Assembly: GCA_900088475.1 (NCBI GenBank)
Contig: FLMG01003335.1
Coordinates: forward strand, 30,842-94,841
DNA: 64,000 nt
Source: Hyphochytrium catenoides
Lineage: Eukaryota > Protista > Hyphochytriomycota
Reading direction: 5' to 3'
The position numbers and the translations under genes were made by a program. The notes under the pieces were generated by a model, which worked only from the letters and a program-made list of their open reading frames with translations, was not told the DNA's origin and searched no databases. Of the stretch, positions 1-38,200 are shown piece after piece (the stretch's first letter is position 1; each line of letters begins with the position of its first letter).

Positions 1-3000
1 TTTGCTGAACTCCTCGATCTGGGCAATGGGCTAGCGGAATGTATTAGAAAAAAGTACTGAGACCGAGTTCAATGTGGGTAACAAGACCTACCGGCTTCGA
101 TCGAGGCTGATGTGATGCGGTGTCTGGTGTCTGCCCACTGACTTCCGGCTGGTCAGCAGGTTCTGTGGTAGGAGTTTGTAGCTCGTTGACCTTTGCCTTA
201 AGAGACGAATAAAGAGGAGAATGCGAGCGACCCAGGATGAGAAATCACAAATGTTTTTGTGCTCTCCTTCATCATTCTTACCCCAGGTTCCTTGTCTATC
301 GGGATGACTGATGCTTCTTCCTTCTTGTCTGTTTTCTCAACAACTGCTGGAGGGGACTGCGCGTTGTCAATTAGCTCAGTTTGAGTCCCACTAAGAGATG
401 GGGTCCGCCGGATGGGTTTTACCACTGGAACAACTTTTCCTGAGTCTATTATAAACAGGCATTTCAGTTGCTTGAAACGTGCGTGGAGGAGCAGTGGTGT
501 CTACCTGACTTTGCGGCCTTCTTCGCTTCGGTTTCTTTTAGTCGCTGGAGGAATGTTGAGTCCTTCCCCGTGGATGATATCTTGCGTCTAGCCTGTGCGC
601 TGCTAGAAGCCGGCGTGGTAGTACTTTTGTTGTTGCCAGCGGGGTCCTTGGGGGGTGTATGCTCCGTACTCTCAACACCTGCTTTAAGGCCATCTTGCTT
701 TTCCATTGTCTCTGAGATGTTATTTGCATTTTAGAGAGACGTACAAGATAAGAGTGAATTATATTCTCGCCCATACCTGCTGTGCTAGTTTTTTTGGTTG
801 GTGATGCGCTACTAGGGCCTCTGCTGCTCTTTGCGCCTAGAATTGTGCCGTAAGCTTTAGGTCTAGAAAAAATATGAGATTCTTGTAGTTAAGAGGCGTA
901 CTTGAGGGCCGTGCTCTACTTGCGCTGCTAGGTCTGGCATTGCGGGGAGTTGGCTCAGGAGTGTTGGAACGCTGATTAAAAGAACTTGATCTCCGTATGC
1001 CAGGTCTGCCACCACCAGGGCTCTGCGGTCACGAGTTAGACAAAAACGTAGGCCATTTGGTGCTAGTCTCTTTACCGGAGAGCGCCTTGGTGTAGCAGAA
1101 CGTTCTTGTTCAACCTTTCTCTCCGCTTCAACCTTTTCCCGAAGTAGTGCTGCCTGACGCTCACGCTCTTCTGGAGTGCCTTCTGCAGCTAGTCTCTCCC
1201 AAACGGGCTTATCACTGGTAGGTCCATCCTATAGTATGTTGAAATGCGTGAGGAAAATAGCCTCACTCGTGCTTCTGGAGCTATTACCTCAGTGCGACTA
1301 CTACTAATATCGGGCCTGAAAGTGCAGCTTTCCTTAAGCTTCTCTTCTGCTAGCTGTTGGGTGGGAACTGTAAGCTCCTTTAGCAAGCCTAACAAGATCT
1401 CGTAGCCTACCTTCTTTAACTTTTCTTCGTCAGTCAACTTTTCATTGGCCAGTCGTTCGAACACATTCTGCGCACGCTTCTTGTCTGGAGAAGGGGAAGG
1501 TGGCCTAGTAATCTGTGGCTTGAAAGTGCAGGCCTAGAAGGATCGTCAGTATGAGGCGATAACTATTCAAAAGTGGTTTTTCCGCAGACCTCTGTTTCTA
1601 GTCGGAGCTTCGTATCCTCTCTCTCTTTCTCAAGCTGCTTCTTGTTATCCTCAGCTAGCCGTTCCCAAACTGGTTTCGCGTTCCCTGTCGCAGGAACGGT
1701 TGCTTTTTCTATCTGTGGAGCGAAAGTGCAGCCCTCAAGTTCTTTCTGTCGTATAAGCAGCTCTGCTTCCTCTAGCTTCTTCTCCTTTTCCTTTCTTTCC
1801 TCATAAAGCCTCTCGAATATCGATGTCTCTTGACTTGCTACCCCATTAGCTGGTCCTGCCGATTGAGGTCTCTTTTTTTGAGCTGAGGCTGGACGAGATG
1901 GCGTCTTTGTCTGTATCCTAGGGTTAAACTTGCGGCAGACCCCACTAAGCGTTTAGATGTACCTTGGCAAGTAGCTTTTCCTCATTCTCTTTCTTCATAG
2001 CCTCTCTCTTAGCCGCAACTTCTTTCAGATAATCCGCATTGTAAAGGCGTTCCACCACCGGCGTCTCTGGTTGGCTCGATCCAGGTCTCTGTTTCTCTCT
2101 AGAAGGTGGTCTACTAACCTTTGGTTTGAAGGTAAGCTCCTCCTGAATGACGAAGGACTGTGAGGATTAACGCCACAGTGATGATGTTCGCTGTACCGCA
2201 CCTTTTCCTTTTGAAGAGTCTCCTGCTTGAGTCTCTCAATTTTCTGCTGCTTTTCTTCCTTGTACTTCGCCATTCTCTCCCAAAATGGTCGCGTGTCCGC
2301 ACCAGCATTTGCTGCTTCACGCCTTTCATCAGCAGCTCCTTCTGGCGAAGCTAGGAACATAGGATTTAGTAATCAATCACACGCCACCAATAATACCACG
2401 CATACCACTGCCGGAAGGCGAACCCGGGACTCCTGCCGAACTTGGACGTTGTCTGGTAGCAGAGGAAGGTCTCTTTGAGACAATTTGGGGCTTGAACGTG
2501 CATTGCTCCATTTCCCTCTTGAGACGCTCCTGAACGACGATTATAAGAAGAAGGCCAATTCTAGTAGTTGCTTGACTTGACTTGCCACACCTGTTCCATC
2601 TGTTCCTCTTTGGCCTTCAAGTTCTGAACTTCAGAATAAAGCATTTCATACCGGGGTTTTGCAGGTGATGGAGCTCTTTTAGCCCTCTCAGATATCTGCG
2701 GTTTGAAAGTGCACCTGCATGATGTAAAGGACTGGTTAAGAGAAATTCCACCTTGTTGGCTGTTAACGTGGAAAGTATACCCTTCTATCTCCGCTGACTT
2801 CCGTCGCTCTTCGATTCGCTGTTTAAGCTCTTGGGCATTCTTGTATAGCTCATCAAACCGGCTTCCATTTGTCTCATTTTTGGATGCTATCTTCTTAGAA
2901 ATGGGGTTGATGGAGGGTTGGAAAGTGCATTCTTCCTGTTGCTTTTTCAGAAGCTCTTGTCTTTTGCGCTCCATCAGCTCGGCGCGCTTATGTAGAGCCT

Positions 3001-3734
3001 CAAATTTCTCCTGCCGTCCCCCAGCAGGACTCTTCCAATCAAACGTATCAGGTAAAAAGCGGTAGCTCTATCAAATTCAATCTTAGAAACTCACCTTCTC
3101 CCCAGAAGAAGAAGTCTTGATCTCCGGTCTGAAGGTGCATTCTGGGTCTTTAGGAGAATCCGCTTTCTCTCGAAGCTTCTTCATTTTCTCCTTGCCTTGA
3201 AGATACAATCGATCTCCAGCAGCAACGGTCTAAGGAGAATGGTTGATTAAAATCAGGCCGCTTGAGAAGAACTGAAGGCATTCATACCTTCGTTTCTGAA
3301 GCGCTTGGATGATTGGGGCTACTACCAGTGACCTGGTCACCACAATTTTTGCCACCACTGCTTGCCGTGCTAGAAGCCGCAGGAGAGCTAGCTGTGTCTT
3401 GATTTGACTGCTACCAATCGAAAGCACTTAATTTAACTGAGATGCAGCAAGAAAGTCATTTTGTTGCTTACAGGGGATCCATTGCTATGCTGCGTGTCTC
3501 CCACTGAAGGATGACAGAACAGCACCACCTTTGGTTAGGTTCGTTATTAGTTCGAGATCTTATAATAAGGATACCTACCTATTGCTTGAACTCTAGGACC
3601 TGAGTCTTTTTGGGATGTGCTTTGACCGCTAGGAAGTTGTATCTGAGCTCTCAGTAAGCATAAACAGACGGCATAGAAACTAACCTTTCAGCGCTTTCCA
3701 CCGTCATCTTGTCCTGCTCAGAGATAGTTTCCAT
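1..3734 (-). CDS. Multi-exon protein with ~9 copies of an (F/W)ERL...E-CTFxPxI repeat, 3' end runs off the window
   Basis: Spliced exons give repeats ending ECTFRPEI, ECTFQPSI, GCTFKPQI, QCTFKPQI, ELTFKPKV, AKFNPRI, GCTFAPQI, ACTFKPQI, SCTFRPDI. Each follows a charged helix (RFDELY, FWERMA, IFERLY, VWERLA, VFERLA). A S/P/R-rich low-complexity region follows. Putative ATG at 3734; phases of the first 2-3 exons are ambiguous. Confidence 0.75.
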
Positions 3735-4975
3735 CTAGCAGCACCAAGCGCGAGCAATGCTACTTTTCCCTCAGGTTAAGGTTTTGGGAAGACGCAGGCT
3801 CCCACATCCACAGCTATTCGGCAGCAAGTTAAAAATAGCTCTAAAAGCTTCAGAAGGGGGACGTCTTGTATGGTCTGCTTCCTAGTTATTGCGATCAACC
3901 GAATTGGCCGTCTCCAGAATTAGCAATTGGCGGGAATCGAAAATTGTCGTCGAAATTGCGCTTCCTTTGGCTCTGCACACAGCGCCATCGCCAGCGCTCC
4001 ATCTTTCCTTCAAACCTCTTTCAAGTCACACACACATCACCCTTTGGAGAGGGCTGAAACCTTCATACAGATAAATGGAAGCTTCAAATGGGACATTGAC
4101 GAATTCAATTCTTCACACGAAGTATCTTCGTCAAATATGCCAAATCTGGCTTGGTAACGACAACCCAAAATATCTTACTACACTCATAGTCCCTAAGATA
4201 GGTACCTAAGATTGATAGTATTACTACTATGGACCTCCCAACGGCGCAGAGGATTATTCACAAACCTGATAGCACATGTTGGCAAAACTCTCACCAAGAA
4301 TTAGTTAAGTGGTAGTGGAAGATAACTGGATCACAGTCTTCAGTAATCAACTAACACTGATCTTCCATCAGTAGAGAGGCGTTTCATGGTGTCGTTTGGG
4401 ATCCCCCTCAGAGGGCACCACACTGGGCCATCCTCCTGCTGGTCCGCCCTGCCGCCACTCACATGCCGCAGCTGCCGCTGATCAACGATCTGAAGATAGC
4501 AGACGCCTTAGAGACATCAAAGTGCAGAAGAGGCGGAGAAGGACTATAAATCATTCCTCCTTTCTCCCTGATGAGCCTCTCTCTCCTGCCACCTTCGTTT
4601 TGCTGGTGGGGCAAGACACAAGTTCCATCGCCAAAGAACGACGGAAAAGAGTAAAGGCTGCCGTCCGTATGAGGCTGGACAGCTAAGAAAGCTGATTGAA
4701 TCGTTTAGTTGTTGGTGTTAGGCTCCTCCAGCTCGACTACTTTGTTGGCCAGTGCATCACCTCTTCTCTGGCATCTCGGCCCGAAGATCTGGAGTATATT
4801 TATGCTCTCTTCTCTACAACGTACCAATCTCATGATTCAGACGGTGGTTGTCAGCTTGGCTCATTGAATCTTGTCCATTACTGCTCTCTGGTTGGTCCAT
4901 TCTCATCTCCAAGTTAGTAGCTAGATATTCGACGAGGTAGTTCGTGGGCGTGTCCTTTAACCTCGAGGGTTTAGG

Positions 4976-7648
4976 ATGGAGGAAGAAGGCTCGTCTCGGC
5001 CTCCGCCTCCTGGCAGTGGAGGGAAAAAAGTTGCACTATCTCCAGCAGCAGCAGCACCAGGAAGTGGCAGCAAACTTTCAGCTTCACCAGCAGTCGCTGA
5101 TATACCACCTGCTATGACGATCGCTCCAGACACCAAAAAGAAGGAAAAACCAAAGAAACAGCGCCGAAGAGTAATCACAAGCAAGGCTGAGAATAACGAA
5201 GGCATCGAAGAGCTTGAAGGTGTACGCGACGACGATGTGAGAGAGCTAGTGAAGGTGCGCCCAACTACTATTGTTATGCGCATCGTGTGCCAGTTTGTCG
5301 ACAACCAAAATCTAACCACCGTCATCCGTTCACCGGACTGGAACGAGTAGCTCGTAAGGCGCATGAGCAAAGTGTTTCGTGAGAAAAGGCATGAGGATCC
5401 GGGATGGAAGCGGGTGAGTGGTCTAGAACATCCTCCTTGAGGACGCCTTTCAATGTATCAAAGCTCAAGCCAGCGGTCTTTTCCACGAACTATCAGGAAT
5501 TCAAGGGCTTGGATCCTAGGTCCGTTGTCTACAGAAGGCTGCTGTTAGACGCTGGGATCATTGGGGAGCACGCGAAGGTACGTCGTCCCGTTGCGCTTGC
5601 TTAAGCTCCGTTGTTGCGCGACTAGTGGAAGAAGAGGGGGGCTAACTCCATGGTTCCATCAGTGGGCTCCATGGTTTCATAGATCAGATGCAATCCTTCT
5701 TCCCAGAGCGGCGGATCGTATCTTGCAAAGGATCATTCAATCCTATGAATCTACCACTGATATAAAAAGACAAGCTGTCATGGAAAAGACAGTGGAAGAA
5801 GATGCAGACATCCTCTATCAGAGCCTGGCTAGCAATTCAGAAGGACTGCCCCCTAAACACCTTATCCAGCGGACCCTCCACTATGCCATCAGAGATAGAC
5901 AATATGCGAACGGAAATTTTGAGTTCAAGGACATAACAGACACTTGGAGCATTCCACCGGAGGACAATGATATCCATATCGCAGGGTTTGCCTCGCCCGT
6001 AGAAGGGCCCTTGGAATCTCTCGGCGCGGAGAAGGTAACATCACGTGCATGGTGGGCTGTTCCTTTATAACATGTAGTCTTCTTATAGAACAGATGGTGA
6101 GAGGAAAAGGTGGTGCAAAAACGGCAGAAAAGTTGGGGAGAGCTGACTGATAGCTGTGAGTTCCGAACCTTCTTCTTCCCATGATGCGCGTCCTAATCTC
6201 ATATCTCAAACCTAGTTCTTCAACTATGAGGGCAGATGGCAACGGGGAAAAATGCACTCTGCTGGCGGTCTGCTACGATTCTATGACGGAGGGACCTACA
6301 AAGGAGATTGGGCAAACAATTGCCCCAATGGCGAAGGGACTGCGGTTGGTTGTCTAGTTGACTACCTAATCCTCTGCCTTGGGAGTCTACCATCTCCAAA
6401 GCTCTTGGCCAACATTGGCAAGACTAAGTGCTTTCCTCGTCCGCTCGCAGGCTTATCCCAATAAAGTCCAATACCTTGGCTCCTGGAGAGATGGTTTGTA
6501 CCATGGCAGAGGCCAGATCCTCTATCCTGATGGTGCCAAGTATAACGGAGAGGTATCATTCAATGGCCAGCAGTCTCGCATCAGTAGTGCTGCTTGTCTT
6601 CTCATCATTTCTTCTGGTGATGTGTCTGCAAAAGCGATCAATATCTCAATTCAAACCGACACTAAAGAAGAAGAGCCATCTATCTGCTAGGAGCTGAAGG
6701 AGTCTGTATACTTGTCTGTTGGTCGCGTTCGTTCCTAAGTTATAAGTAGTTCTCTTCTGGCACTGGTTCGCTTATGCTTTTTGACGCAGTGGGAAATGGG
6801 ACGAAGGCATGGACAAGGAGTCTTCACTTCTGGTTCTGGTCAAGTTTACGAAGGTTCATACGTGCATGGAGCCAAACATGGCAAAGGCAGCATCTACGAC
6901 CGGTGAGTGTCTTAGACTGTGGTGGCGGCGTTCGTTGCAGCTAAAAATCGTACTTGGTCTTCCTATCATGGCTGCAGCAGCAGATAGTACTACTTATAAC
7001 TCCTCTGACTCATTTGGCCTCTTCCCCAGAAGTCCAGTGAGATGTTGCCTATCATCGATTTGGCAGTATAAGTGGGCTCTTCTGGCGATCGTCTCTCCTA
7101 GCCAATGAGTGCGCTGGTCATTAACTTCCGTCCTATCTCTGCAATCTCTTTTAGATCTGGCTACCGCTTTGATGGGATGTGGGTAAGGGACAGGATTGAG
7201 GGCTACGGGACGTTGACACTTCCTGATGGCAAAAAGATACTCAAGGCGAAATGGCCAAGGGCCATGTTCGGAGGTAGGAGTACAACAAGGCGGAATGCGA
7301 ATGACCAGGAACAAGAGTAGAACGAGTACCGCCCCACCGTCTCTAACTAAGTTCTACCAACATCATTTGTTTGCCTTAGAGACTATCCGAAGCGTCCGGA
7401 GAGAGCAGGGTCTTGAGTCTGAGAGACGAAGGCAAGAATGGAACAAGCTTGTTGAGATGAGAGATAGATTACGAGCGGCTGAGATGGTCGGAGAATATCA
7501 TGCCATCAAAGAGTGGGAAGAAGGGGAGAAAGAGAAAGCAGAAATGCAGAAGAAGCTGGAGGCGAAGAGGATGCGCAGATTAACCCAAAAGGCAGAAAAA
7601 CGCCACAAGATTGACCAAATGCTCAAAGAGATGAAGGATGACGCCTAG
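4976..7648 (+). CDS. MORN-repeat protein with long N-terminal region and C-terminal coiled coil
   Basis: Exons encode MORN units: YKGDWANNCPNGEG, YLGSWRDGLYHGRGQILYPDG, YNGEWEMGRRHGQG, YEGSYVHGAKHGKG, FDGMWVRDRIEGYG. GT-AG phases are consistent where traced. The last exon is the charged helix ending MLKEMKDDA* at 7648. Confidence 0.85.
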
Positions 7649-7883
7649 AATGTTGCAGGCCTTGCGTGAGGGTGTAGACTCCAGAGCTGCTTAGAGCTGT
7701 CGAGATGGAGATAAGCAAAGGGAAGGGCACTGCACAAAGGCATAAAAGCAGTGATTATGATTTAAGTGCGGCACACCCCGCATTGTCTGCACCCAGATGA
7801 CACTTGCGGCGCCTTCTTATCCAGCACTATGCCATGTATAGGGACTCCAGCAGATCCTTATAAATCTTGCCTTCATATATCGT

Positions 7884-9859
7884 TTATGGCGTAGCCTTGA
7901 CATCCAACTCGGCTTCAGTGGCATCCCACAGTGTTGCCTGTGAGTCTTGATGCCAGATTTTGGCCCTAATAACAGAAGGCTGACACTTAGTGGCCTTTAT
8001 AGACGCAGCGGTTGCAAGCAGCAAGGACAAGGATGGACAAGGTGTAAAGATAAGCGCCAGATATTGGAGCAGCTAATCATTACCTAGACCATCTGAGACA
8101 GGGGCAAGTCCTGGAGTCAAGATTCAAGTGCTTCTCACGTAGCTCGGTAGCTTCGTTAGCACTCTTTCCTGAAACAATCGTCACGTCCGTGCCTCGTGCA
8201 AGCATGTAGCCTGCTCGTCGAAGGATCAGTGCTGGTTCCTTTGACTCCTTGCTTTCGTTCTCCAACCTATTTCTTTCTGTTACTCTCACTTTCTTGCCCA
8301 CTTCTCTTTTTGTCCTGCTTTTGACTCTGTACCGACCCTACGACACCGCTGCCCTAGGCCCGTTGTAAAATCCATTTTGTAAGCAATCATCGACAGTCGT
8401 CTCACCATCAGGAAAGCGGTAAAATTCTTGTCCCTCTTCTCCCTTGGGACCAGCCGAGATTCTGCAACCTGTCATATCAACGTCGTACGCACTGGGAGGT
8501 CCAAATAAGAGGAGAAGGGCAGCGGTTGGTGAATGTCTGCGTCGTAAGTCTTGGTGCCCCAAGTGTTGGATAATAAATTGACGAGCAAAAAAGTGCCATC
8601 AGGTTCTACAGAGGTCCAGACCACAGAGCTAAGGCTTCCCAGAATACAATGCCTACTATCATCGACCAACGGAAGAATGTGCAAAACAAGAACGAAGAGA
8701 TAAGAACAGTGACAAGAGCGTAAGAGATAGAAAGACATGAAGAGCGCACTGCCCAAAAGGCGCCACCTCTTAGGTCCAAGGGACGCGGCATACCTTCTAT
8801 TGACAATAGCCACTCTGTCTCTAAGAAAATCTAACTGGCCTACGGAGACCTTTCCTCTCATTTCACTGGAAAGCGTTCGCCGTGGGACAATGCCGGAGCC
8901 CCTGGATGCCAGCCAGTAACCAAGCAAAAGCGAGAGAAAACTCACCCCTACCCCCATGGTAGCGGCGGTGCCAACATTTACACTAGAACGAAACTAGATG
9001 AAGCCCCAGTAAGGTGGTTCAATGTTAGTCTGAGTTGATGGAGTGCGATCTAAAGGACGGCAAAAGATACCAAAAGGAGCAAAGCCCCATAGTCCCAAGA
9101 GAAGAAGGCAAGCATCTGGCGTTTGTGCAGAATCAGATCTCAGATAGCAAGCGAGCGGTAGCAGGTGCAAGAAGGGCAATGTCGGAAGCATCTCTTAACA
9201 TACCTGCTTCAGACCAAAGAGATCTGGCACCAGTGATCCGTTGGCCGCCTTAGTCGACTCAAAGAAATGGTCAGAATAAACACGACACTGATCCTGCAGA
9301 GCCTCCAGTTCACCCTGTAGAGCAGAGACTTCTCTCTCTCCTGCTTCTGCTCTCTCTAGCACCTGATTAAAGATTTCTTGGAGGCTGCGGTAAGAGTAAA
9401 GGACGAAATGTCGAACCTTCGCGACGTACCATTCCGTTGCCTGTCTAGTTCCTAGGCAACAGCAAGGGCGCGACCAGCAACAGGCGGAGAAGGAAAAAGC
9501 CGTTCAAGGTGAGCGAAGGGAGGCAAGAGGGAGTTAGTCACCGAGAGAGGGCTTGCGCGACGAAACCAAATAAAAAGGGGAAGCAAGGACAGGAACATGA
9601 GAGGAACAAAGAGATACCACAAATAGTGGAGAGAGCCTTTACAATGTTAAGAAGCCGTACTTACTTGGTGCATCTGCTCCATCTTGGACTTAAAGGAAAG
9701 CTGTGACCTCACCTCTACCTCCGCATCAGAGCCCACAGCTAGATCTCTGGTCGCATGACAGCCGTGCCTCGGCAAACAAAGTAGCAGCACCAGAGCGAGC
9801 AGAAGAGTGCGCCTCGGACCACAGAACAGTGGGGAGTATGAGTATGAGTAGTCTGCCAT
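7884..9859 (-). CDS. Signal peptide + coiled coil + transmembrane helix + lamin tail domain (LTD, Ig-fold) protein, ~294 aa, 7 exons
   Basis: Exons 9859-9665, 9451-9430, 9376-9204, 8993-8794, 8491-8406, 8210-8084, 7965-7884 (885 nt) join in frame via GT-AG introns. The C-terminus GKVSVGQLD..VAIVNRSAYDVDMTGCRI..YRFPDGYMLARGTDVTIVSG..LRWSRAKIW..ATLWDATEAEL matches the LTD pattern. The exon 2/3 junction has an alternative solution. Confidence 0.8.
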
Positions 9860-11467: not shown

Positions 11468-12223
11468 TCACACCTTCATATATACCACCCCGTTACTCTC
11501 AGGGTTACCGACGACACCGGCCATCACTGGGGTGCCTCCTCCTATTACTGGAGCAGCCACCAGGAAAACGTCGTTATCGTCGACTGTGAGAGATGTTGTC
11601 GCGGTATACTTGGGTGGCGGGCCACAAGAGGAGGAGGCGGAGGCACCTGAGTCTGGGAGGCGCCTGGATCCAACCTGCAACCCTAACTGAACCAAACTGC
11701 AGCACTGACAGAAGAGCGAGCACAGTACGTCTTCGGTGCAGTTTCCCGGTACTTGAAAGATGCTCCGGACTCGCATTCGCAGCCAAAGAAGAAGTGCGAA
11801 GGCCAATCCGGTTGAACAAGCACCAAGTATGATAATAAGCTGAAGACTGGCAAACAGCTTCCCCATCGTATCTTCATCATCTTCTTCTGCATCATAGCAG
11901 GCTCTCCTCACCTCGTAGAACGAATAGCAGGACTTCGTGAAGTACCAGTCGTACACATAATATCTTGCCGCGAGATTTGGAGCGACTACCAGCAACAGGT
12001 AAAGAAGCGCTGCCGTTCCGTAAGAGAGAGCGCCAATTCTGGCGCTGATCTGCCCAAAAGAGATGCAGGGACACCATAGTGCGATGCAGCAACCATCGCC
12101 ACAACACGCATCATTCTTTGCCTCGGGGCGCCATTGACCAGTGACCGGGAGCGGGTACCCTTGTTCATCAACTGGCGTTGCTGGCTTGCTACTTGCATTA
12201 ATTTCCGCTGCCGTCTGCTGCAT
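11468..12223 (-). CDS. PLAC8 family Cys-rich membrane protein (single exon)
   Basis: GQW..ACCGDGCCIALWCPCISFGQISARIG and LRMRVRSIFQVPGNCTEDVLCSLFCQCCSLVQL are the two PLAC8 half-motifs. Two hydrophobic helices lie between them. First ATG at 12223. Confidence 0.9.
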   Translation of the reverse strand: MQQTAAEINASSKPATPVDEQGYPLPVTGQWRPEAKNDACCGDGCCIALWCPCISFGQISARIGALSYGTAALLYLLLVVAPNLAARYYVYDWYFTKSCYSFYEVRRACYDAEEDDEDTMGKLFASLQLIIILGACSTGLAFALLLWLRMRVRSIFQVPGNCTEDVLCSLFCQCCSLVQLGLQVGSRRLPDSGASASSSCGPPPKYTATTSLTVDDNDVFLVAAPVIGGGTPVMAGVVGNPESNGVVYMKV

Positions 12224-14226
12224 CTTGGTAGTAGTTATACCGCAGGTGGTGCTCACTTGTGCTGCTGCTTATAGTGTCGATCGGCCGCAAGCCTTGTTGG
12301 TTGATGAATGGGGAGGATGGTGATTCAAGATAGAATGATAATCAGGACCCTTCTCCGTTGACAAGATAGGCAGTCGGCAAGCAAGCTCTTCTGCTCGCTC
12401 CTAAGGGCCTATCAATTGTCTGTCTCTTGTTAAGGAGATTCTACAGTGAGTCGAGGATTTGACACCAATGCTGAGGAGCGGGTAGGGAAGGACGCAGACC
12501 ACCTACGCCTTCTTCCTTCCTGTGCTGCCACGCAGCCCAATAAAGGTGCCCTCTTCTGCTGGGTTGCCAGCCCGTCTTCCTTCCTCGACGTCCGAATAAG
12601 CAGGTTCGTCATCTTTTCTTGATGTAGGCAGCAGCAACGAGGAGGAGGAGGAGGAGAAGAAGACAAATGACAAGCACATAGCCGCTGGCTGTATCGCTCT
12701 CCGAGGATCCAGCAGAAGAGAGCGGATGCAATGATGCTGCTTGCTGCTGGTAGGAACCGGGGGAGCAAGGAAGTACTGGTACTCCATCCTTCTGGTCCAA
12801 TGTGGACAATCTTCAGCAGTCAAAAATTCTCAACAGCCACCGATGGTCACCCTCCGACCCAAGCCCCGGCGCCATTATTGGCTTGAAAGTAGAATAAAGG
12901 TAGGGAGCTTCCTTCCTCCTTCACCGCTCGCCTTGCATCTCCCGTAGACCACTTTATCTTCCTCTGATCCTCTACCTTCTCCTGGTCCCTTTGCTCTTAC
13001 ATTGAGGGAGAGGACGATCGTCAAGCAATGAGAGCGCTTTAGGTTGGACAAGGAGCGGCCTCCGTTGCCCTTTCTGATTTATAATGACGGCTTTCTGATG
13101 TCACATGTAGAACACCCACCAAGAAGGTGTTACTCTTAGACCGATGACCAAAGAGAGAGTGGACGGGAGGACGAAGAGAAAAAGAACGAGGAGGTGTTAG
13201 CGGCTCCGTAGCGTCCAAGACAGACCCACAGCTCAGACATAGACGCAACTTCCCGTCTCCAAAGTCTCAGAAGTCGTCATTCTTCTTGGTCTGAGAACAT
13301 TTATTCGAGGCTGTCAGAGGAAAGACAGAGAGAGAGAGAGAGAGTCGGCATGACCTTGGAGGTTATTGGCCATAGACCTGTCTTACCTACGGGCGGTAGG
13401 TCCTACTTCCTTACAGGGCCCTTATAGTACCGGCGAGGGCCATGAAGGCTCCTTCAGATGGTGTTGGAAGTCACGAACCGCTCCTGCCCTTCCAGCTCTG
13501 ACCATCACTAAAGAAGTCCACCGGGCTAGGACAGCTCCTAAAGTTTATGATGAAAAGACCCACAGGTCCAGTTAGAGGGAAACCTACAGGCCAAAATGGC
13601 TGTTCGTTGGCCTTGTCACACCCTCCACCGGTATGGTCGTTAGCCTCGAACCTTGATGAAGAGAGTCTGTGACGGCAGTACGCTGAATAATGATGAATCT
13701 TTTTATCGGATTTGTACACGCCGAGTGCTCTGGGGGCTTGGCCATTCAGCTTCCTAGTGAGTCTCACCGCTCCCTAGAATTCAACCACATTTCGCCATGC
13801 CCATCGCTCTTGCTGCTCTTGTCCTCTTGCTCTGCGCCCGCGCGCCTGCTAGCTACTTTGGTGCTCGTATCCGCTGCCTGCTAAAGACGTCGCCTCGCAT
13901 TGACTTCGTCCCAAGACAAGAGCTTTCCATGCAAAGAGGCTCAACAAGTGTTGCAGCGACACTGCAACCTCCTCCGGTTATCGATCTCTCGTCATGTCTC
14001 TCTTTCACGAAGGTCTAAGAGTTGCTTGATTGAAGGTAATAGTACCTTGTGCCCTGGTCACTAGAGCTCTACGAAACAAGAGCTTACAGAGCTCTATATG
14101 GACTTCCCAGCAGTGGGACTGCTGCCTTTACTTAGTGTTACCATCGTATGCTATCCTCAATAAAGCGACAGCCCAGCTCATGCAGCAAACTGTTAATCAC
14201 TCCCTTATAATGTGCTTGCATCCTAT

Positions 14227-17200
14227 CTACTTGGTTGGAGTTGGTTTTACACCGCCCGCCACCTTCGCACTTGGCGACGCTTTGCTGGCTGACGGTCCGA
14301 CCTTGGCCTGGACTTTTCTCTCTGGAGTCCGCTTGACCGCTCCTGAGGCTTTAGGTGAGACTTGTGCTGGCGCGGCCTCCTTAGCAACCTTCAGAGTGCG
14401 TGGCGAGGCTTTCGCTTTAGAGGGGTCCTGGACTGGTTTAGATGCACGAGTGGGTGAGATCACACCCCCAGATGCTCCAGCCTTGGCCACACGGGAAGGG
14501 GAAAGAGGAGTAGTGCCCGCCTTCACAGGGGTAGTGCCCGCCTTCACAGATGGTCGCCTGACGGTGTCCGCCGGTGCTTTGCTTCCAGGAAGTGCTTTGC
14601 TGGCAGCTGCAGCCTTACTCACCACGGCAGATTTTCTTGAGGGTGAAGGTGTTCTCTTACTCTCATTGTCACTCTTCCGAGCGCTTACCTTGGGAGAAGA
14701 GGATGGAACTGCGGCAACTTTTGCAGATGGCTTGGACTTTGACGGTGCCTTGGCAGCATTACCAGGAGCTTTCGCCTTACTCGCGTCAGCTTTAGGTGCG
14801 GGACTTGATGACTTTGCTTGAGAGTCGACAATCTTAGCTCTGGAAGTAGATGAAGGGGAGAGAATCTTCTTTTTGTCCGCACTTGGGCTAGGAGACCCCT
14901 TCGTTATTCTTTTCGGAGAAAGAAGAGTAGACTTCTTTTCCTCTGCTGCGGCACCAGACGCCGCTGACCTAGCAGAAGAGAGCAGGGACTTCTTCTGCTC
15001 AACCGCAGATGATGGAGGAGAAACATTTTCATCGGCGGCCGACGAGAGAGGGGCAGTGTTTTGTTCCCCCACAGACGGCACCTTTGCCGGTGAAGCAGGG
15101 GGCACCGTTTGCGTCCGCTCTACATCCTCTTCCTTGCGCGCTGGCTTAGGTTCAACTGGAGAGGCACCGCCAGTTGCACCGCCAGTTGAGGGTTCTGGTG
15201 CAGGAATCGAAGATGCGGATGATGGAGATATTGCTTTGCCCTTGAACTTTCCAGACTCTCCAGGTCCCTTTGGCCCTCCTCCAGCTTTCCTGGTCGCGGC
15301 TTTCTCCTCTGCAGCGCCTTCAACCTACCATCAGAAGAGATGTAAAGCGCTATGACTCAGTTCGCCCAATGGCCGGTCAAGAGCTGTATCTTATCTCCTA
15401 TCCTCTTTGCAGGGTTACTCGTATAACTCGCCTCATACCTAAGCCTTACCTCAAGCTTCTTGAATAATATCTCGCCAATGCTCACGCTAGTGCCTGGAGT
15501 CAGATTCTGAAAGTTGGACTTCAAGTTGCTAATTCCTACAGCAGGCGTGTTCAACCTCTCGAAGATCTTTCCGCTGGCCTCAGGGAGGAAAGGTGAGAGA
15601 AAGTGCGCGATGACGTAGATCGCTTCCAGCACGGAACGCACAATTTGCTGTTGCGCTTCGTTATCCGAGAGGTGCCACGGCTCTTTCTCTGTCAAGTACC
15701 TACGAGCGTCACATGAATGAGAAAAAGTGTCGAGTGCTGTCTGAATGACTGTGATTTGCCCTCAAGATTGAGTTAGGAGCATGCGTAGGATATGCAGGCA
15801 GACATGACAACCGCAATGATCAGTAAATTAATGTAAGTGCGGGCAAGAGTTAGCAACAAGTCAGGAAAGACTAAAAGACGAAGGGGGTTTAGGTCTCCTC
15901 CTTCGCTTTCACGACCTACGCTTATAACCTTACTTATTCGTGTCCTTCGTGGCTTCGACTGCGAACTCCGCAGCCTCTTGCAGCTGGAAGTGAAAGATGG
16001 CTTTGTCCGTCTCGTACGCTAAGCGCTGCACATCGAAGATAGTATCCGGCCTATGGGGAGGGACACAACCTCCACAGTATTTCTTTGTAAGGTTAACCAC
16101 TCGATGGACCAAGTTCCCTGGAGAATAGGGTAGGAAAGGAAGTGATCAAGTTAGCCAGCAGGAATATCACTATCCACATAGAGGAAGCGTGTACTGATAG
16201 TAGCCGAGGTATGAAGCTCAGCAACCCCGATAACACCTCTTAAACGTGGTGCCCTCTAAAAAACATACCAAGAGTGTCCGCTAAGTCTGCATTATGCATC
16301 AAGATCAGGCCGGCCTCAGAGAAAGGCACATCCGCGCCGAAAGGTGATCCTCTCACGACATAGTACCGGATAGAGTCCGCTGCATATTTATTCTGCAGGG
16401 TAGCGTTACAGCGGCATAAGAAGAGGACGAATACGGAGGGGCTGACGAGAGGGGTGCTGAATTCGAAGCAATCGAAGCAACAAAGTGGACTTTAAGGGGC
16501 ATAGAAATTAAGGCTCTAGCTAGCAGGCTGTCCCCATTAGGTTAGAGGATTGAAGGCATAAGCAAATGCGAACCTATAAGGCGTCCAAGGGAGAGAGAGT
16601 AAAATGTGCGCCAGGAAGCAAGAATTTCGTGCTTTCCTGGCGTGTCTCTTGAACAAAGAGAGGCCTCAGCCCTAAAAAATCTATGAGGGAGGCCTTACCA
16701 GTATTTCGTTAGGGTCCACAGTGTTACCCAGGCTCTTGCTCATCTTGCGCCCATCTGCTGCGTTGACAAAACCATGGGCGAAGACAGCACGAGGTAACGG
16801 GATTTCGGCTGAGAGAAGAATACAGGGCCAGATCACAGTGTGGAACCATATGATGTCCTTGCCTACGGGGAAAAAATACTGGGTCATACTCAACGATAAG
16901 CATGCTCGGGCTCCTTAACAGCCTGAAACCTCTTCCTCCTCTGAAGCATACCTTTGTAGGCTATCTCCCTTTCTCTAACTTTCCGACACTATTGACTGCC
17001 TCGTACTCCAAATATTGTCCTTCAAAAACTCTCTCTTACCGATTATGTGCACGACGTTGTCCCACCACTTCTTGCCATCGTCACCGTCCCAGTAGTTGCA
17101 ACCAGTGATGTAGTTTGTCAGAGCATCAAACCAGACGTACATGACATGCCTGAGGATAACAATATTAGGCTACCACGGAGAGCGAAAGCGTTATCTATAA

Positions 17201-25848: not shown

Positions 25849-28800
25849 CTATTTAGGAACCCTAGAACGGACGATATTGACGGTTGTGACAATCCGCTTT
25901 GACTTCTTCTTCATCCAGTGCTGCCGCTCCATGAATTTCCACCTATTTTACAGGGAAGCGTCAGCGCACGGCCGTCCGAGTCTATTTGTCTGTTTACCGA
26001 CGTCAACCCTTCGCTACTGAAACTCTTTCGCCTATTAAATAGCACGTCACTTAGAAGTAGCAATACCTGTTGGGATCCTCTGGTATGAGATCGTTCTTAA
26101 TACCCCGATCTTCACATCTGGCTCTCAGCCGTTTGACATGCTTCTCCTTAACCTCGAGGCCCTGATCCTTCATCATCTGGTTTGGCAAAATTAGAAGTAG
26201 CACTGGGCGCCCTGCATGAACTGGCAATCCCACCTGCAGAAGCTTGAAGGAGTCATCGAAGCGCCCAGCTTTGGCACAGGCATCCACCATCAGTCCGAAC
26301 ATATCAGCATCAGGTTCAATGGGTCCATTCTGTATAGCAGAAATTGGAAATGAGAGCCACGAGAGAACATGAGGCCGCAAGAAGGACTCCATACGCTCAG
26401 AACTGAAAACGATAAGGAAAGAGGTGGTGCAGGCTTCGGACATCACTACTATAGCCAAAGAGAGAAGTTGTAGTTTCAAGGCAGTAAGCTGCACTCCAAG
26501 GGCGCAATAGGCATGTAGAGCCTCCGGTTCACAGGGGCATCTTCTTACCTTCGCAAGCGACAGGAGAAGGTCTTTCGCAATTCCACCCTTACCCGCTCTG
26601 ATGTACATCTTCATGAGTGACCGGAACGTATGGATCGTAGGCTCAATGTCGTGCTCATCGAACCTAGGAGCAACATAAGCGATTAGTGTGTATGTTACAA
26701 TAAGGTCATTTGAGAAGGGTCCTCGCTCCTCATGGTCCACGACCCACGCGGCTTCCTTGGCAAGTAAGACAGTCCTTTGCGCAGGGCTTGATCTGCGGAA
26801 CTATCCCACAAGACTATGGAGGTCATCCTCATATTTACAAGTGCATCTAGCTACAGTGTCATCTTGTTTCCAAATTGCTAGAACCCTCCTTCAGAAGTGT
26901 CTGCCCGATATCCCTAGCCCTTGAGAACATAAGAACATAACTCTCACAGCTGTTTCTTACAGTGAAAGAACAGCTTTGGCTTTGTCAATCTCCACCGCTT
27001 CGGCGAAAACGTTCAGAAAACTGTTCAAAGAGGCCGACGAAACAGGGACATCACTCTCTTGAAGGTCTGCGAAAATGGCCTCTGCCTCACCCAAGAGCCG
27101 CTCCTTCAACTCCTCCTTTGTCTCTTCGACATGCGGCGAGAAAACCAGCGCTACGGAAGACGAAGTTAATGTCGATCTTAGATTGATGGCAGTGTGCTAT
27201 AGCAGGCGAAGAAGGCAATAAGAGAGGGGCCCTGCTTTGAGAGATAACGCAATAGTAGTGGTCATGGCACAGACAAGGGCATGAACAGAAAGGGGAAAAC
27301 ATACAAATGGATGACACCAAAGCCACTGACAAACGGGAATCCGACGTACACAAAAGAAAAAGGTCAACGCGGAGGTAGACGAAGGAGACATGACAGTTGA
27401 GTTTAGCGACTGACGGTATTGCTTTACCGTCAGAAATGCGCTTCGCTTCCGCTGTAGCTCGGTGGACAAGCTCCTCCGCTTTGTGCAGACCCCTTCGACC
27501 GTAAACATCCAAGACGACATCAAGTGCTTCTCGCTCCAAAAGCTCCTTTGTCCTGACCTCTTTTGATCTCTCCTCGTGTTCTTTTTCATCTGGATCTCGC
27601 TCTGCTAACCCCTCAAGTTCCTCCTCAAGTCGTTCCAACTCTTCGTCATCGTCGTCGTGAAAGAGCCCCTTGCTAGACCTCCTGGACTGGAACTCTGTGG
27701 AGCGTAAGGGAGCGTTCTTCGTCCGCTCGTACCTTTCGAGTGTATCGCGTGGATCTGCACCCCTCGACCGGTACCATATTACAAGGAGATGGTCAAGATC
27801 AGTCTGAGAGGTCTTTTGACTGGAGAAAGATGGCAAAGACTAAAATGACACAACCTTTGCTTTGGCATAATGTCGAAAGCAACAGCTATTGCGAAACTGG
27901 AGGGAAGACAGAAGGAGAACGCGAGGGTTACAAACCAACGTGTCATTGGCAGACACTAAGACTGTAACGGTGCAGGTACACTAAGACTGTAACGGTGCAG
28001 GTGACACTAGGTAACTAGAAGGCTAAGTAACATACCGTTGAGAACTACGGGCAAATACTCTGTCTCCTTGATCAGGCTGACACCCGCATCCTTCTTCTTA
28101 CCCAGCCACTTGTGAGCGGAGAGAGCCTTTGCATAAGTGTTTAAGAGAGAAGAGAATGTGTGCTCTTCTGGTTCGTGGCCTTCATCCCTCATTTTCATGA
28201 AGGTCTTCACTGCACTCTCCACATCTCCGGTCTGCACGCAGCTCTGAAGCAGGATATTATAGCTTACAGTGTCGGGCTCATAGCCTGCCACCTTCATCCG
28301 CTGGTGCCTGGTAGTTACAAGGCATAGGAAAGTATCAGTGGAATGGAGACAAGGACCATAGATCATCGACGTGAGGAGAGAACCAATCAGGGCAATACGA
28401 ACCACACGGTAGTCAGCTTCTGATAACCCGTAGAACGTGCACACGCCGTCATCATTGTGAGGAAAGTTTTCCTATCTGGTTCTATGCCCTTCTGTTGCAT
28501 CTCTTCCATAAGATTGTTGGCTCGCTCAACCTGCTCGCAACGCATTATAAGGTACCGTGAGCAGTGAATTATCCGCAACGCCCTTGTACCTCTCCTCCCC
28601 ACACCATGCCATATGTTAAGTCTCTTCTGCATATGTTATGACCATTGAGACGGCTCGTCAATGCACACTACCCCACCCGCTAGGAAGGGAGACCAGCAAA
28701 ATATCGTCAGCCGGCCCTTCCTGCCATTTCTACTAACCCTCCCCTAGCACTGTCACCGCGAGGCAGCTTTACTGGGCTTGGCTCTGAACTACTTGCACGA

Positions 28801-31430: not shown

Positions 31431-34112
31431 ATGCTATCTGCAGTAAAGAACCCTGTGAAGAGGGCCCTGCCATCAGTAGCAGCACTGTGGAAGCCCAATC
31501 GCGTCTCACTGTTGGCGATTCCAAGACGTTTAGCTCCACCTCTTGTACGCCCGGTGACCTCAAAGCTTGCCCTGCACGGAAGTACTGTCCTCAGAGCTGC
31601 TTCTGCGTCACAAGGATGGAGAGGCTTTGCTAATCAAGCACCTCAAGGCCAGGCGTGGGTCAATCCTGAGAATGTCCCTGCAGGAGAAAGCTTGACGAAG
31701 TACGGTAGAGATCTGACTGCTGTTGCTAAGGGTAAGCAATATTAAACTGTCTTGTAACCCATCCTTTATCTGACTTCTTGTAATGCAGACGGCAAACTCG
31801 ACCCTGTCATTGGTCGTGAGGAGGAGATTCGGCGAACTATTCAGGTGTTGAGTAGGAGAACAAAGAATAATCCAGGTAACGAACAGAGGTGAGGTATTAA
31901 TGCAGCGGGTAGCATCTAACTCTCTCCATTCCTCTCTGTCATATTCCAGTCTTGATTGGTGAGCCAGGCGTGGGAAAGACAGCAATGTAAGTCTTGACTT
32001 GGTGAGGACTTGCTGGCAACAAGGAAACTAATCCATGTATCTTTCTCCTCTCTATCTTGAAGCGCCGAGGGTCTGGCGCAGCGGATTGCGGCTGGAGAAG
32101 TCCCTGAAAGCATGAAGAAGATGCGGGTAGTTGCATTGGATATGGCGCAGCTAGTAGCTGGTGCGAAGTTTCGAGGCGAGTTTGAAGAGAGACTGAAGGC
32201 TGTTCTTAAGGACGTGGAGGAATCCAACGGTGAGGTCATCCTCTTCATTGACGAGCTCCATACGCTGGTAGGGGCAGGAGCGGCCGAGGGGTCTGTGGAT
32301 GCCTCCAACATGCTCAAGCCAGCTTTGGCAAGAGGCACACTGCGTTGTATGGGAGCCACTACCTTAGACGAGTATAGAAAGTACATAGAGAAGGACGCAG
32401 CGCTTGCGCGACGATTCCAGCCTGTCCTTGTAAGCGAGCCAGGTGTTGATGACACCGTGACCATCTTGCGAGGGCTCAAGGAGAAATATGAAGTGCATCA
32501 CGGTGTGCGGATCACAGATGGAGCTTTGGTAACGGCAGCCACCCTTGCCAATCGGTATCTGACAGAGAGAAAGATGCCCGATAAGGCCATAGATCTCATT
32601 GACGAAGCTGCATCCCGCTTGAGACTGCAGCAAGAGAGCAAGCCCGAGCCTATTGACAAACTGGAAAGAGAGATCATAATGCGCAAGATAGAGATAGAAG
32701 CGCTCAGAAAGGAAACTGACCAGGCTTCGAAGAAGAGGATGGAACACCTCGATGAGCAGGTGAGATTGCTCCAGAAAGAAGTAGATGCCCTTACGGAGAC
32801 TTGGAAGAAAGAGAAAGAGTACCTGCAAGAGATGAAGCAAGCTAAGGAAAAGTTAGAGGAAGCGAGAAGAGAACTTGTCTTGGCTCAACAGAGAGGGGAC
32901 TACGCTCGCGCAGGAGAAATCCTCCACGGGGAGATCCCACGGCTGGAGCGCTTAGCAGAGGCCGCCGCTAGTCAAGAGGACGGACCGACGAATAAACCGC
33001 TCTTAAATGACGCGGTGACGTCCGACCACATCGCAGAGGTCGTTGCCAGAGCAAGCGGCATTCCCGTATCTAACCTGATGGAAGGAGAAAAACAAAAACT
33101 CTTGAACATGGAAAAGCAACTTTCTGAGAGAGTTATCGGCCAACCCGAGGCAGTCACGGCGGTCAGCAATTGTATAAAACTATCAAGAGCGGGGCTCCAT
33201 GGACACAACCGTCCCCTTGGTGTCTTCCTCTTTCTCGGACCAACGGGCGTGGGCAAGACAGAACTGACGAAAGCTCTCTGTGAGTTCATGTTTGATGATC
33301 CCCACGCCATGACGCGGATTGACATGTCCGAGTATATGGAGAAGTTCAGCATCAGCAGACTCATTGGGGCCCCCCCGGGTTATGTTGGCTACGAAGAAGG
33401 AGGGACTCTGACGGAAGCTGTGAGAAGACGACCATACCAAGTCATTCTTTTTGACGAGTTCGAGAAAGCCCACAGAGATGTTTCCAACCTTCTCTTGCAG
33501 GTGTTTGACGAAGGTAAGATAGGGGCTTCCTCTTGGTTTACACCTAGTTAGCTGTCCATCCCTCTCATCCCAACTCTCCCTCTTACGCAAACGTCGCCAT
33601 CTGCAGGTCGTCTCACTGACTCACAAGGACGGCTTGTGGACTTCCGGAACACCGTTATTATTTTGACGAGCAATCTGGGTTCAGAAATTCTCATGAACCT
33701 TCCGGAAGGAGTCCCAAGCTCTGCCGTAGCAGCAGACGTTAGGGCGGTCGTTCGCTCACGCTTTGCCCCAGAATTTCTTAACCGCATCGATGAACAGATT
33801 GTCTTCAACAAGCTCTCTAGGCAGGCGATGACCCACATTGTGGACTTACAACTGGACCAGGTCTCCAAGATGCTTACAGAGCGGGAGCTGAACTTTGAAG
33901 TGACAGACAGAGCGAAGAAGTGGCTGGCGGATATATCTTATGATCCACACTACGGAGCTCGTCCTCTCAAAAGAGCTATCCAGCGCTATCTGCTAAACCC
34001 TCTCGCCAACAGGTTGCTAGAGGGACACTACAGCGACGGAGATACCGTTAAAGTGGATTACGACCCCTCACTCGGAGACCTGCCACCTGAGACGGCACTG
34101 ATATTCAATTAG
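31431..34112 (+). CDS. clpB: Mitochondrial ClpB/Hsp78-type disaggregase (no Clp N-domain)
   Basis: The presequence leads directly to [25 protein letters not shown]. Walker A1 [17 protein letters not shown]-domain coiled coil, Walker A2 [33 protein letters not shown]. Confidence 0.96.
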
Positions 34113-35229: not shown

Positions 35230-38200
35230 ATGGAGAAGCTCATGGAGAGCAAGACGCTTACGGAACTTCGCCAGTAAGCCCTTCTTGTGGATCGCCTGCG
35301 TGACTTTCTGCATACGCCTTTTTGTACTTCCGAACTCCTTTCTGAGTTCAAGCCTTTCCACGCCACCTAATCTTCGCATGCCCCATAGGGAGCTGGACGG
35401 TGCAGGAGTGAGCACTAAAACCCCAGGGGTAAGAGGCGAGGAGCGGAAGGCCATCTTGGCCCAGCGAGTGCTGGATGCACGAAAAGAAGTCGCGAGAGCG
35501 GAGTGGCGAAAGCAGCGACAGGGCTCCAGCCAGGGACCTATCGCCAACGAACGCGAAAGTGAGGGGAATGTGGTGAAAGAAAAGTTCCTTCAGCCCTCCA
35601 AGTCGCCACCACCCCAGGCAGCGACACAGAATCATGCCACCGAAAGGGGTGAGTTATTCTTCCTTCCCACTTATGAGATCTAACCCTTTAAGCCTAATCG
35701 CCCTGGTGGTCCACTTACTCTTAGTCAACTCACAATCAATTTGTGGCAGCTTTGGTCATCCTCAGGTCTCCCCTGCCAGCTCCGGAATTTCTCAGGTTGG
35801 GCGACACCAATCAAGCTTTTATGGCTTCTGTGTGAATCATGATGCTTAGAGCTTAACTTCTTTAACAAGTTTGCCTTAACTCTACTCTCTGCCTCCTCAG
35901 CCGAGAAGTCCATATGGTGCCGAAGCAGAGGTAATCGGGATGTCGGAAAGACATCATTGTGCGGGGAAGAAGGGTGACGAAAGAGCAATAGAGCCTAATG
36001 GCCTTTCCGCGCGTTCTTGCAAACCAACTGAAGTCGATTCGCCTGCTCCAGCTTCAGAGGAGGATGTTGGGCTTCTCCAAATGGCGCACTGGGCTGAGGT
36101 ACTTTTCTGCCTTAGAGAGCTGAAGAGTACATTTCCACCTCCACCATTTTCTTTTTATGCCCTTAGCAGTCACGCGGTTCTCCAGTTCCACTTTTTCTTC
36201 CATTTCTGAACCGGGTTATGTCTTCCTGCTGAGTATGGATCTCCTAGGTCACCTGCATATCTGACCGCACCATGTTACACTCTCTCAGGTACAGGAGAAA
36301 GACTATGGCAAGGCGGATAGCTGCTATCAGCAATACCTTCGTTCTCACCCCGACGACGGCGGTAAGGCCTACCTTCGTGCACCCTTCTTCACTTGTTTCT
36401 ACTATTTCCAGAGCTACCTTCACGTGCACATAGACTCCTCACCAGTTCAGATATACTATTAGGAGGTTTAGTCTCTATCGTATGCCAGGTTCCTTTGACT
36501 GCTAATCTGCACCCATATTACTTTTTGTCCGTGCTCCTCTTGTTTTACCTATTGCCGCCTGGCGTGGAGCTGATCGGATATTCAATTTCAGCTACCCTAG
36601 GGCATTACGCTTATTTCTTGGAAAGGAGGCTCAAACAATTGGACAGAGCTGAACAGTTCTATCAACGGGCACTGGAGGCTCATCCTGATCTTGTGCCTAC
36701 CATATCCCAGTATGCAAAGTGAGTGCACTTGGCAACGTGAATCCAAGCTCCTAAGCTTGTCTGCGGATTGTGCCGTTGTTGTCCACCCCTAGAGCTTCTT
36801 TGCAGGACTCGGCACACAGCCTTACAATCAATTACCTCTTCCATACTTCTCAGTGTCACTCTATCTCTTGATAAGCGCTTAATTTTCTGCATCCCACTTG
36901 ACTTGCATGATGTGCACGTCCTTGACTTTGCTGGTGTGCATTCCTTGAATTTGGGGAGACGTAGGCTTACATCTCGGCCCTGTACCTCTATACATGCCCC
37001 AGTTGATTATCTTTGTCCTAAATTCTCCGGTACTGTGAGCGTTGCATGGTTGCTGCCTCTTTTAAACCCTCTCTCAAGTCAGCTCTTTCTGTTCTCCTTC
37101 TATTGCTACATCAGCTATCTAAAAAAGCATCGAGGAGATTACGACCGTGCAGAACAGTACTACAAGCTTGCCCTGGAGAAAGCACCGGGCCATCCGGACC
37201 TGTTGGGCAACTATGCTCTGTTCTTGAAGGGGTGCAGAAGAAATCTATTTAAGGCAGAAGCGCTCTTCAAGGAAGCGCTAGTCAAAGACCCATATCATAG
37301 TAACAACCTAGGTAAGCTTCACGAGTGGGGCATAAGCAAGGCAATTGTCACTTAGGCCTAGGACCGGACCGGGACCTGCAGAGCTTAGGCCGCCTTGGTC
37401 AAGCACAACTGAGACATCTTCCTCATAAACTGTAGGCAGCTATGCTGGCCTGCTGAAGAAGGTCGGCCGTTTCGATGAGGCCGAATCTTTATATCTTAGG
37501 GCCACAGCCAACGAGACTTGCAACGCGAACATTCTTGGTGAGCCTTACTTATGACTACCATATAGGTGAAAGAGTTTAAGAGTCGGGAACGAGATGTGAG
37601 GAAGAAGTGGAATGAGATCAAAGAAAGATATAAGGAACAGGGTCAGTCCTAGACTAAGAGGCGAGAGATTATCCTGAGTTTTGGAGCGCAAGCTTTATGC
37701 CAAATATTCAGAGACTGTAAGTACCGGGAGAGAGCAGGACACGGAAGACTGGTAGAGGGGTCTTCGCTTCTAACCTCTAGTTATCCTGTCAATAGGTAAC
37801 TTCGCCAACTTTATGCACTCTGTACGAGGCAAGCCTTCTGTCGCACGAGATCTCTATCTTCGGGCGTTGAGACAAGATGCGGAAAATCACATGGTCGCCA
37901 GGAACTACGCAATCTTTCTAAGAGATACGCCGGGCATGTGGGCAGGACGAGGCAAACGGTAAGCACAAAGTAATCTTCCGGGACTGTTCTCTAGGAGCTG
38001 ATAACAGGAACCGAGTATCGGCTCCCCCTTTGAACTCTAAACGTATGGAATACTAACTTTCCAATCCTTTCCTCTTGCCCAAATCCGCTGCTCCAATCTA
38101 CTGTTATCGTCTTCGTGACAACTGTGTCACCGGCTGATTGCTTTTCAAAAGTATTCAAGGTAGACCGCCTTCAGCGATGAAAAAGCAGACTGATGGAGGA

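Follow-up and report, generated by a model that had tools for sequence, protein, structure and literature searches.

The lamin-tail domain (LTD) is known from the lamins and from many bacterial secreted proteins, and the eukaryotic LTD proteins that are not lamins have barely been studied. Can such a domain also be carried by a small membrane protein that holds a coiled coil on the other side of the bilayer? The question is raised by a 64,000-nucleotide stretch of Hyphochytrium catenoides DNA (contig FLMG01003335.1, positions 30,842 to 94,841; hereafter the window), in which an earlier note, made by reading the letters, had proposed a hidden gene of seven exons and about 294 amino acids (aa) at positions 9859-7884 of the minus strand. 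Its product was described as a signal peptide (SP), a coiled coil (CC), a transmembrane (TM) helix and an LTD in succession. We find it best explained, with a probability of roughly 0.55, as a type I membrane protein of small size, with a lumenal helix that would oligomerise the chain and an LTD that would serve for docking on the side of the cytoplasm or nucleoplasm.

An intron-rich gene on the minus strand

Assembled by script from the reverse complement, the seven exons add up to 885 nucleotides (nt), which translate into 294 aa followed by TAA. The coordinates, the GT..AG borders, the single open reading frame (ORF) and the codon bias all agree with the gene as it was first proposed, and every peptide string quoted for it is present in the translation. 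An in-frame stop lies upstream of the exon 1 ATG, at about 9913. The exons are as follows.

Exon 1, 9665-9859, minus strand: 195 nt, with the ATG at 9859; residues 1-65, ending in phase 0; signal-peptide-like N-terminus (residues 1-36, coded by 9752-9859), then a linker and the first part of the heptad segment
Exon 2, 9430-9451, minus strand: 22 nt; ELDRQRN plus 1 nt, with the borders ag/GAACTA...GGAATG/gtacgt
Exon 3, 9204-9376, minus strand: 173 nt; remainder of the coiled-coil-like segment and an N-G-S sequon
Exon 4, 8794-8993, minus strand: 200 nt; an uncharged hydrophobic segment, then a stretch rich in K/R; the LTD strands begin at about 8855
Exon 5, 8406-8491, minus strand: 86 nt; LTD core, SAYDVDMTGCRIS...EFYRFPD
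Exon 6, 8084-8210, minus strand: 127 nt; LTD continued, GYMLARGTDVTIVSG...LRW
Exon 7, 7884-7965, minus strand: 82 nt including the TAA (7884-7886); last LTD strands, IWHQDSQATLWDATEAELDV, then KATP

All six introns run from GT to AG, with the donors gtaagt, gtacgt, gtatgt, gtatgc, gtgaga and gtaatg, and their lengths, in order, are 213, 53, 210, 302, 195 and 118 nt. Since the introns of the ClpB gene in the same window measure about 40-90 nt, the 53-nt intron is ordinary for this genome, and the gene as a whole fits the per-gene figure of 3.64 introns and the mean intron of 208 bp given for Hyphochytrium catenoides (PMC5795050). The gene is nuclear and rich in introns, and its stramenopile host stands close to the oomycetes.

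The 22-nt second exon turned out to be the sole way from exon 1, which ends in phase 0, into the single open frame of exon 3. A direct splice of exon 1 to 9384 or to 9376 was rejected, both versions meeting stops. With exon 2 included, only the acceptor at 9376 stays open while that at 9384 meets a stop, so that the choice between the two, which the earlier note had marked for checking, can be read from the sequence; the heptad periodicity, moreover, continues across the small exon. As a side observation, exons 2 and 3 together measure 195 nt (9204-9451, minus strand), a multiple of three, and exons 1 and 4 are both in phase 0; if the pair were skipped, the frame would be preserved and the isoform would lose the coiled coil while retaining signal peptide, TM helix and LTD.

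To gauge the coding signal we trained a log-odds score of codon usage on ClpB together with further coding ORFs from the window. The proposed frame was preferred in six of the seven exons (the 22-nt exon being too short to judge), and exon 3 scored second highest among them, at 0.149. In the introns the score was negative except for two near-zero frames (+0.02 and +0.04), and the entire coding sequence reached the 97.7th percentile of random 885-nt windows, each taken in its best frame.

The C-terminal lamin-tail domain

Comparison of the C-terminus with the LTD family relied on proxy profiles, drawn from 120 loci of bacteria and archaea that had been picked out by a degenerate DNA version of the LTD motif [DE]WIELYN. 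Ten of the source windows were sampled: Pfam assigned nine to PF00932, with E-values of 1e-12 to 1e-20, and the tenth held an unrelated molybdopterin-binding protein. These loci span a wide range of phyla (Bathyarchaeota, Nitrosarchaeum, Patescibacteria, Planctomycetes and Bacteroidota among them) and contain 220 LTD domains in 123 ORFs, many of which carry at least two copies.

A first hidden Markov model (HMM) built from the 120 sequences scored the spliced protein at 7.8 bits (E=1.3e-4, Z=1), and an iterated HMM of the 220 LTD domains from the same loci raised this to 14.6 bits (E=1.2e-6, Z=1), whereas none of 2000 shuffled C-termini exceeded 4.4 bits. The highest score came from the central part: a sub-HMM gave 21.3 bits (E=1.5e-8) on residues 193-245, and exon 5 alone scored 13.2 bits against it. 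In line with these scores, hhalign of the model reported a probability of 80% (E=1.4e-5), and the protein ranked first with both HMMs among 4796 real control sequences, which comprised the non-LTD ORFs of the fetched loci and all six-frame segments of the window. Among the 2172 segments of the latter kind, the open frame containing exon 5 was also the top LTD-HMM match. When the C-terminus was compared by phmmer with 2748 ORFs, LTD ORFs made up 15 of the 24 top matches as against 4.5% of the database. Judged by these profile comparisons, the C-terminus is a real LTD relative, as the earlier note had held from the look of the translation.

That the family's name-giving domain is within reach of the proxy profiles follows from a search of the PDB with a third profile (A1, built from 40 of these LTDs), whose 12 best matches were Ig-fold chains of lamin A/C and lamin B2, all over the same central stretch only. 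In the resulting alignments the lamin A segment NKSNEDQSM...YRFPPKFTLKAGQVVTIW shares LTD-profile columns with the model's NRSAYDVDM...YRFPDGYMLARGTDVTIV. The likeness to lamin A given in the earlier note therefore stands for its central strings (NKSNEDQSM, YRFP and LKAGQVVTI), whereas for the last strands it is a likeness by eye. The same holds for exon 7, whose resemblance to the LTD C-terminus, including that of the H. catenoides lamin, was seen by eye, its place in the gene otherwise being given by splice signals and the open frame. The significant LTD alignment runs unbroken across the junctions of exon 4 with exon 5 and of exon 5 with exon 6, and thus lends independent support to those two splices.

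Close comparison with the known members of the family reveals both shared and divergent elements. The extracytoplasmic PF00932 proteins of bacteria and archaea (CotH-type and others) have in common with this protein a central signature of N-x-S, x-V-D-[LM]-x-G-x-x-[IL], a short loop, [FYW]-x-F-P-x-G and a hydrophobic strand, and a domain length of about 110-115 aa. The INE...DWIELYN strand pair of the bacterial LTD, however, is not recognisable here, and whereas the bacterial proteins are usually large, multidomain and secreted, in this case the LTD forms the C-terminus of a eukaryotic protein of 294 aa whose gene has six spliceosomal introns, and its predicted side is the cytosol. In the Ig-fold of lamin A/C (PDB 1IFR/1IVT), the pattern NKS...M..W.I / YRFP / L.AG..VTI corresponds to NRS...M..C.I / YRFP / L.RG..VTI in our model, and in both proteins a coiled coil lies N-terminal to the LTD. 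The hyphochytrid protein lacks the intermediate-filament rod of about 350 residues, the nuclear localisation signal (NLS) and the CaaX box, whose absence had been pointed out at the outset (the C-terminus reads ...DVKATP); the interval between coiled coil and LTD is a hydrophobic segment; and, unlike lamins, it has a predicted signal peptide and a probable membrane helix that would put the coiled coil and the LTD on opposite sides. Pfam gave no Filament match on any exon. The predicted protein is not a lamin.

Membrane topology and competing readings

The N-terminal half was examined by hydropathy, periodicity and charge. Residues 11-29 form the most hydrophobic stretch of the protein (Kyte-Doolittle 1.91). 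The Leu-rich core measures only 12-13 residues, RR stands ahead of it and C-H-A occupies positions -3 to -1, a combination that reads as a signal peptide and not as a TM helix, as had been suspected of this signal-like N-terminus. Further along, residues 59-106 (48 residues from exons 1-3, coded by 9276-9685 including introns) are free of proline and rich in E, Q, L and R. Their hydrophobic periodicity at 3.5 residues has a power equalled by 0.7% of shuffles (p about 0.007), and Pfam on exon 3 gave a single weak match of Tropomyosin type (E=0.07). These features would suit an amphipathic helix or a coiled coil of short length, and the heptad segment named in the earlier note is indeed periodic. 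Finally, residues 135-162 (exon 4, coded by 8898-8981) comprise 28 uncharged residues with an LLL-G-Y-W-L-A core, the best 19-residue window of which reaches 1.66 on the Kyte-Doolittle scale. Two K/R precede this segment within 15 residues and five follow it within 18, which by the positive-inside rule would leave the LTD side in the cytosol or nucleoplasm. Hydropathy and charge counts together fit a type I single-pass membrane protein. Of the proposed TM helix with its LTD on the cytosolic or nucleoplasmic side, then, the orientation is favored by the charge counts, while the hydropathy of the helix is no higher than that modest value.

From this arrangement a simple mechanism can be sketched. 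A cleavable signal peptide would direct the N-terminus into the lumen of the endoplasmic reticulum (ER), leaving an amphipathic heptad helix of about 48 residues on the lumenal or extracellular side, where it probably oligomerises the protein. One membrane helix would follow, presumably inserted in the orientation given above, and the LTD of about 115 residues, predicted to be Ig-like, would be displayed on the cytoplasmic or nucleoplasmic face as a module for docking proteins or a ligand.

Several results weigh against this reading. The join of exons 1-3 to exons 4-7 rests only on splice signals and phase, and residues 135-162, with their many Gly, Ser and Thr, reach only a moderate hydrophobicity. 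On the side of the domain, Pfam gave no LTD match on single exons, pieces of 26-66 aa that are too short for it; in hhalign of single exons against A1, exon 5 alone aligned (columns 62-74, E=0.005, low probability); and exon 6 by itself was not significant against the LTD profile (a phmmer search of the PDB with this exon returned a designed repeat protein only, which we rejected as spurious). The N- and C-terminal thirds of the domain were not significant against the bacterial sub-HMMs; lamin A, however, likewise matches the bacterial profile only in its central 50 or so residues, so that a match confined to the centre is the lamin's own behaviour. With hmmsearch of A1 the model scored only 4.5 bits, in contrast to its significant score with the 220-domain profile, and the result therefore depends on the breadth of the profile. 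Nor did exon 4 lead to relatives: its open frame (173 aa, with words taken from exon 4) found none in a database of 5.8e9 at 95-303 aa, phmmer against 1.84 billion representatives of any length gave no homologue, and of 599 pattern matches in the JGI metagenomes none was confirmed, although a 66-residue probe is blind to distant orthologues and these negatives mean only that no close relative is on record. Single exons are poor probes for distant LTD relatives. The gene is for now an orphan.

The central issue is whether exons 3 and 4 belong to one transcript. In intron 3 the donor is gtatgt, a branch-like ACTAAC motif stands some 30 nt ahead of the ctag/ acceptor, and phase 0 is joined to phase 0; we regard the joined seven-exon model as reasonably probable. 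Alternatively, there could be two transcription units, or an internal start, with exons 4-7 translated from the ATG at 8957 (MGVGVSFLSLLLGYWLASRG...) and the hydrophobic segment serving as an N-terminal signal peptide or anchor. The products would be a secreted or lumenal LTD protein of about 154 aa and, from exons 1-3, a separate small secreted coiled-coil protein. The ATG at 8957 is well placed for this, directly ahead of the hydrophobic core and with A at -3 and G at +4; if intron 3 were retained, the upstream ORF (9195-9362) would stop two codons past the donor (...GLKQVC, then stop); and exons 3 and 4 are bridged by no homology. Bacterial LTDs typically lie outside the cytoplasm. The separate product would share that location with most of them, and the loci fetched for the profiles carry N-terminal hydrophobic leaders. 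Yet the signals of intron 3 are good and its phase-0 join meets an open frame that starts exactly at the acceptor, the n-region of a signal peptide begun at 8957 would be without positive charge, and the 238 nt between the upstream stop and this ATG are tight for a terminator and a promoter, a point that argues against two genes and not against an internal start. On balance, we consider separate products unlikely, if still deserving of some weight.

Other accounts keep the seven exons together, or dispense with them altogether. Were the exons joined as proposed and residues 135-162 not membrane-spanning, the protein would be a soluble, secreted or ER-lumenal combination of coiled coil and LTD; the hydropathy of 1.66, the several Gly, Ser and Thr in the first half of the segment and the lack of a charged anchor residue inside it speak in its favor, but 28 uncharged residues in a row around the LLL-G-Y-W-L-A core, followed by five K/R within 18 residues, have the usual look of a stop-transfer sequence and make a soluble product improbable. 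We attach next to no credence to the idea that there is no gene and that GT and AG, both abundant, merely let a reader thread an ORF through a chance chain of open segments: a 22-nt exon is unverifiable, to be sure, but LTD homology that is colinear over two splice junctions at E-values of about 1e-6 to 1e-8, frame-specific codon bias in six of seven exons and the heptad periodicity would be hard to come by in this way. A more specific form of the membrane protein, advanced in the earlier note, places it in the inner nuclear membrane (INM), its LTD docking to lamin or chromatin and its lumenal coiled coil acting like the stalk of SUN proteins, as an alternative component of the lamina or of the LINC complex. 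The architecture, with a small extralumenal domain, an LTD and a lumenal helix, is compatible with such a role, and canonical lamins, with LTD and CaaX, have been tabulated in hyphochytrids (Hyphochytrium itself included) and oomycetes (Koreny & Field 2016, PMC5630835), so that the probable host clade has a true lamin, a point that the note had wished to see checked. No NLS or INM-sorting motif is evident in the protein, however, and LTDs occur widely in proteins that have nothing to do with the nucleus (PMC5630835). The likeness to SUN and LINC proteins is limited to a lumenal coiled coil beside a membrane helix and, opposite, a domain in the nucleoplasm or cytosol; here the coiled coil of about 48 residues, which could bridge little of the perinuclear space, is N-terminal, behind the signal peptide, and the C-terminus is the LTD. 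Neither a SUN domain nor a KASH peptide is present, Pfam giving no match to either on any exon, and the predicted product is not a SUN or KASH protein. Nothing that we found places it at the nuclear envelope, and its casting as a SUN-like stalk or LINC component was speculation. We give this placement little chance, and regard as equally doubtful the associated picture of a membrane-embedded lamin tail that would dock lamin, chromatin or lamin partners as a lumenal-coiled-coil oligomer, independently of CaaX prenylation.

Membrane-associated LTD-like proteins in other stramenopiles

For the type I membrane protein that we favor, the nearest precedents come from within the same supergroup. LTD-like proteins have been reported in several eukaryotes with the remark that 'none contain coiled-coil regions' (PMC5630835), and it was partly for want of a coiled coil that Koreny & Field 2016 set the non-lamin LTD proteins aside. 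Three of them, Saprolegnia XP_012194028, Nannochloropsis W7TNN4 and Ectocarpus D8LHR1, are listed as LTD-like and uncharacterised (PMC5630835, supplementary table S1). By eye, each has an N-terminal LTD-like domain, no signal peptide and a long hydrophobic C-terminal half that looks multi-pass, an aspect not discussed in that paper (PMC5630835). The likeness extends, again by eye, to N-P-SAYDIDL in Saprolegnia against N-R-SAYDVDM here, and to EGYTLAPG in Nannochloropsis against DGYMLARG. In these proteins as in ours the LTD is joined to membrane-looking sequence, but the order is opposite: the domain is N-terminal in the listed proteins, whereas here it is C-terminal and followed by the stop at 7884. 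Additional 3' exons coding for a multi-TM region of the Saprolegnia type were rejected, the end of a convergent plus-strand ORF at 7648 leaving no room for them.

The three proteins may represent an uncharacterised membrane family with a cytosolic LTD, and the analogy suggests that stramenopile LTD-like domains can work at the cytosolic face of membranes. Should the LTD of the Hyphochytrium protein face the cytosol or nucleoplasm, it would add to these hints of LTD modules on the cytoplasmic side of stramenopile membranes. With regard to the claim that no protein of this architecture had been described, a full-text literature search recovered no paper describing an SP-CC-TM-LTD protein; the claim has to be softened nonetheless, membrane-tethered LTD-like domains with the opposite domain order being already on record in stramenopiles. 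The protein is thus best seen as a new arrangement of a known domain family, its SP-CC-TM-LTD order undescribed.

Other genes of the window

Elsewhere in the window the following features were recognised.

11468-12256, minus strand: ORF with a PLAC8 (Cys-rich) domain, E=2e-12
14030-15355, both strands: overlapping long ORFs; the 292-aa ORF of the minus strand is rich in Ser, Ala, Lys and Pro, of low complexity and has no Pfam match
26051-28444, minus strand: PPR-repeat exons (PPR_2, E=8e-15 for 28010-28444, weaker for 26051-26740)
31590-34112, plus strand: multi-exon gene for a ClpB/Hsp104-type chaperone (AAA_2, AAA_lid_9)
36768-37352, plus strand: TPR-repeat exon
58324-59317, minus strand: SPRY-domain exon, E=1.4e-10; the adjoining exon is RanBPM/LisH-like by eye

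The GC content of the window is about 0.49-0.50, and no tRNA genes were found in it. A run of N at about 62310-62430 (about 38 X in the ORF translation) marks a scaffold gap of the draft assembly. The overlapping frames at 14030-15355 are probably one low-complexity coding exon whose antisense strand is open by composition, and the PPR exons at 26051-28444 probably belong to one gene for an organellar RNA-binding protein. The 479-aa exon of ClpB is 72-76% identical to its counterparts in all oomycete groups (Pythium, Phytophthora, Albugo, Aphanomyces and Saprolegnia; the matched proteins are 741-775 aa long), 67% identical to that of Tribonema and 65% to that of a labyrinthulid. Since proteins of that size passed the length filter, the source organism's own ClpB would have come up had the database contained it, and it did not; an exact look-up of a neighbouring 357-aa ORF likewise gave no entry. 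The oomycete groups are all about equally far from this ClpB, which suggests a lineage sister to them.

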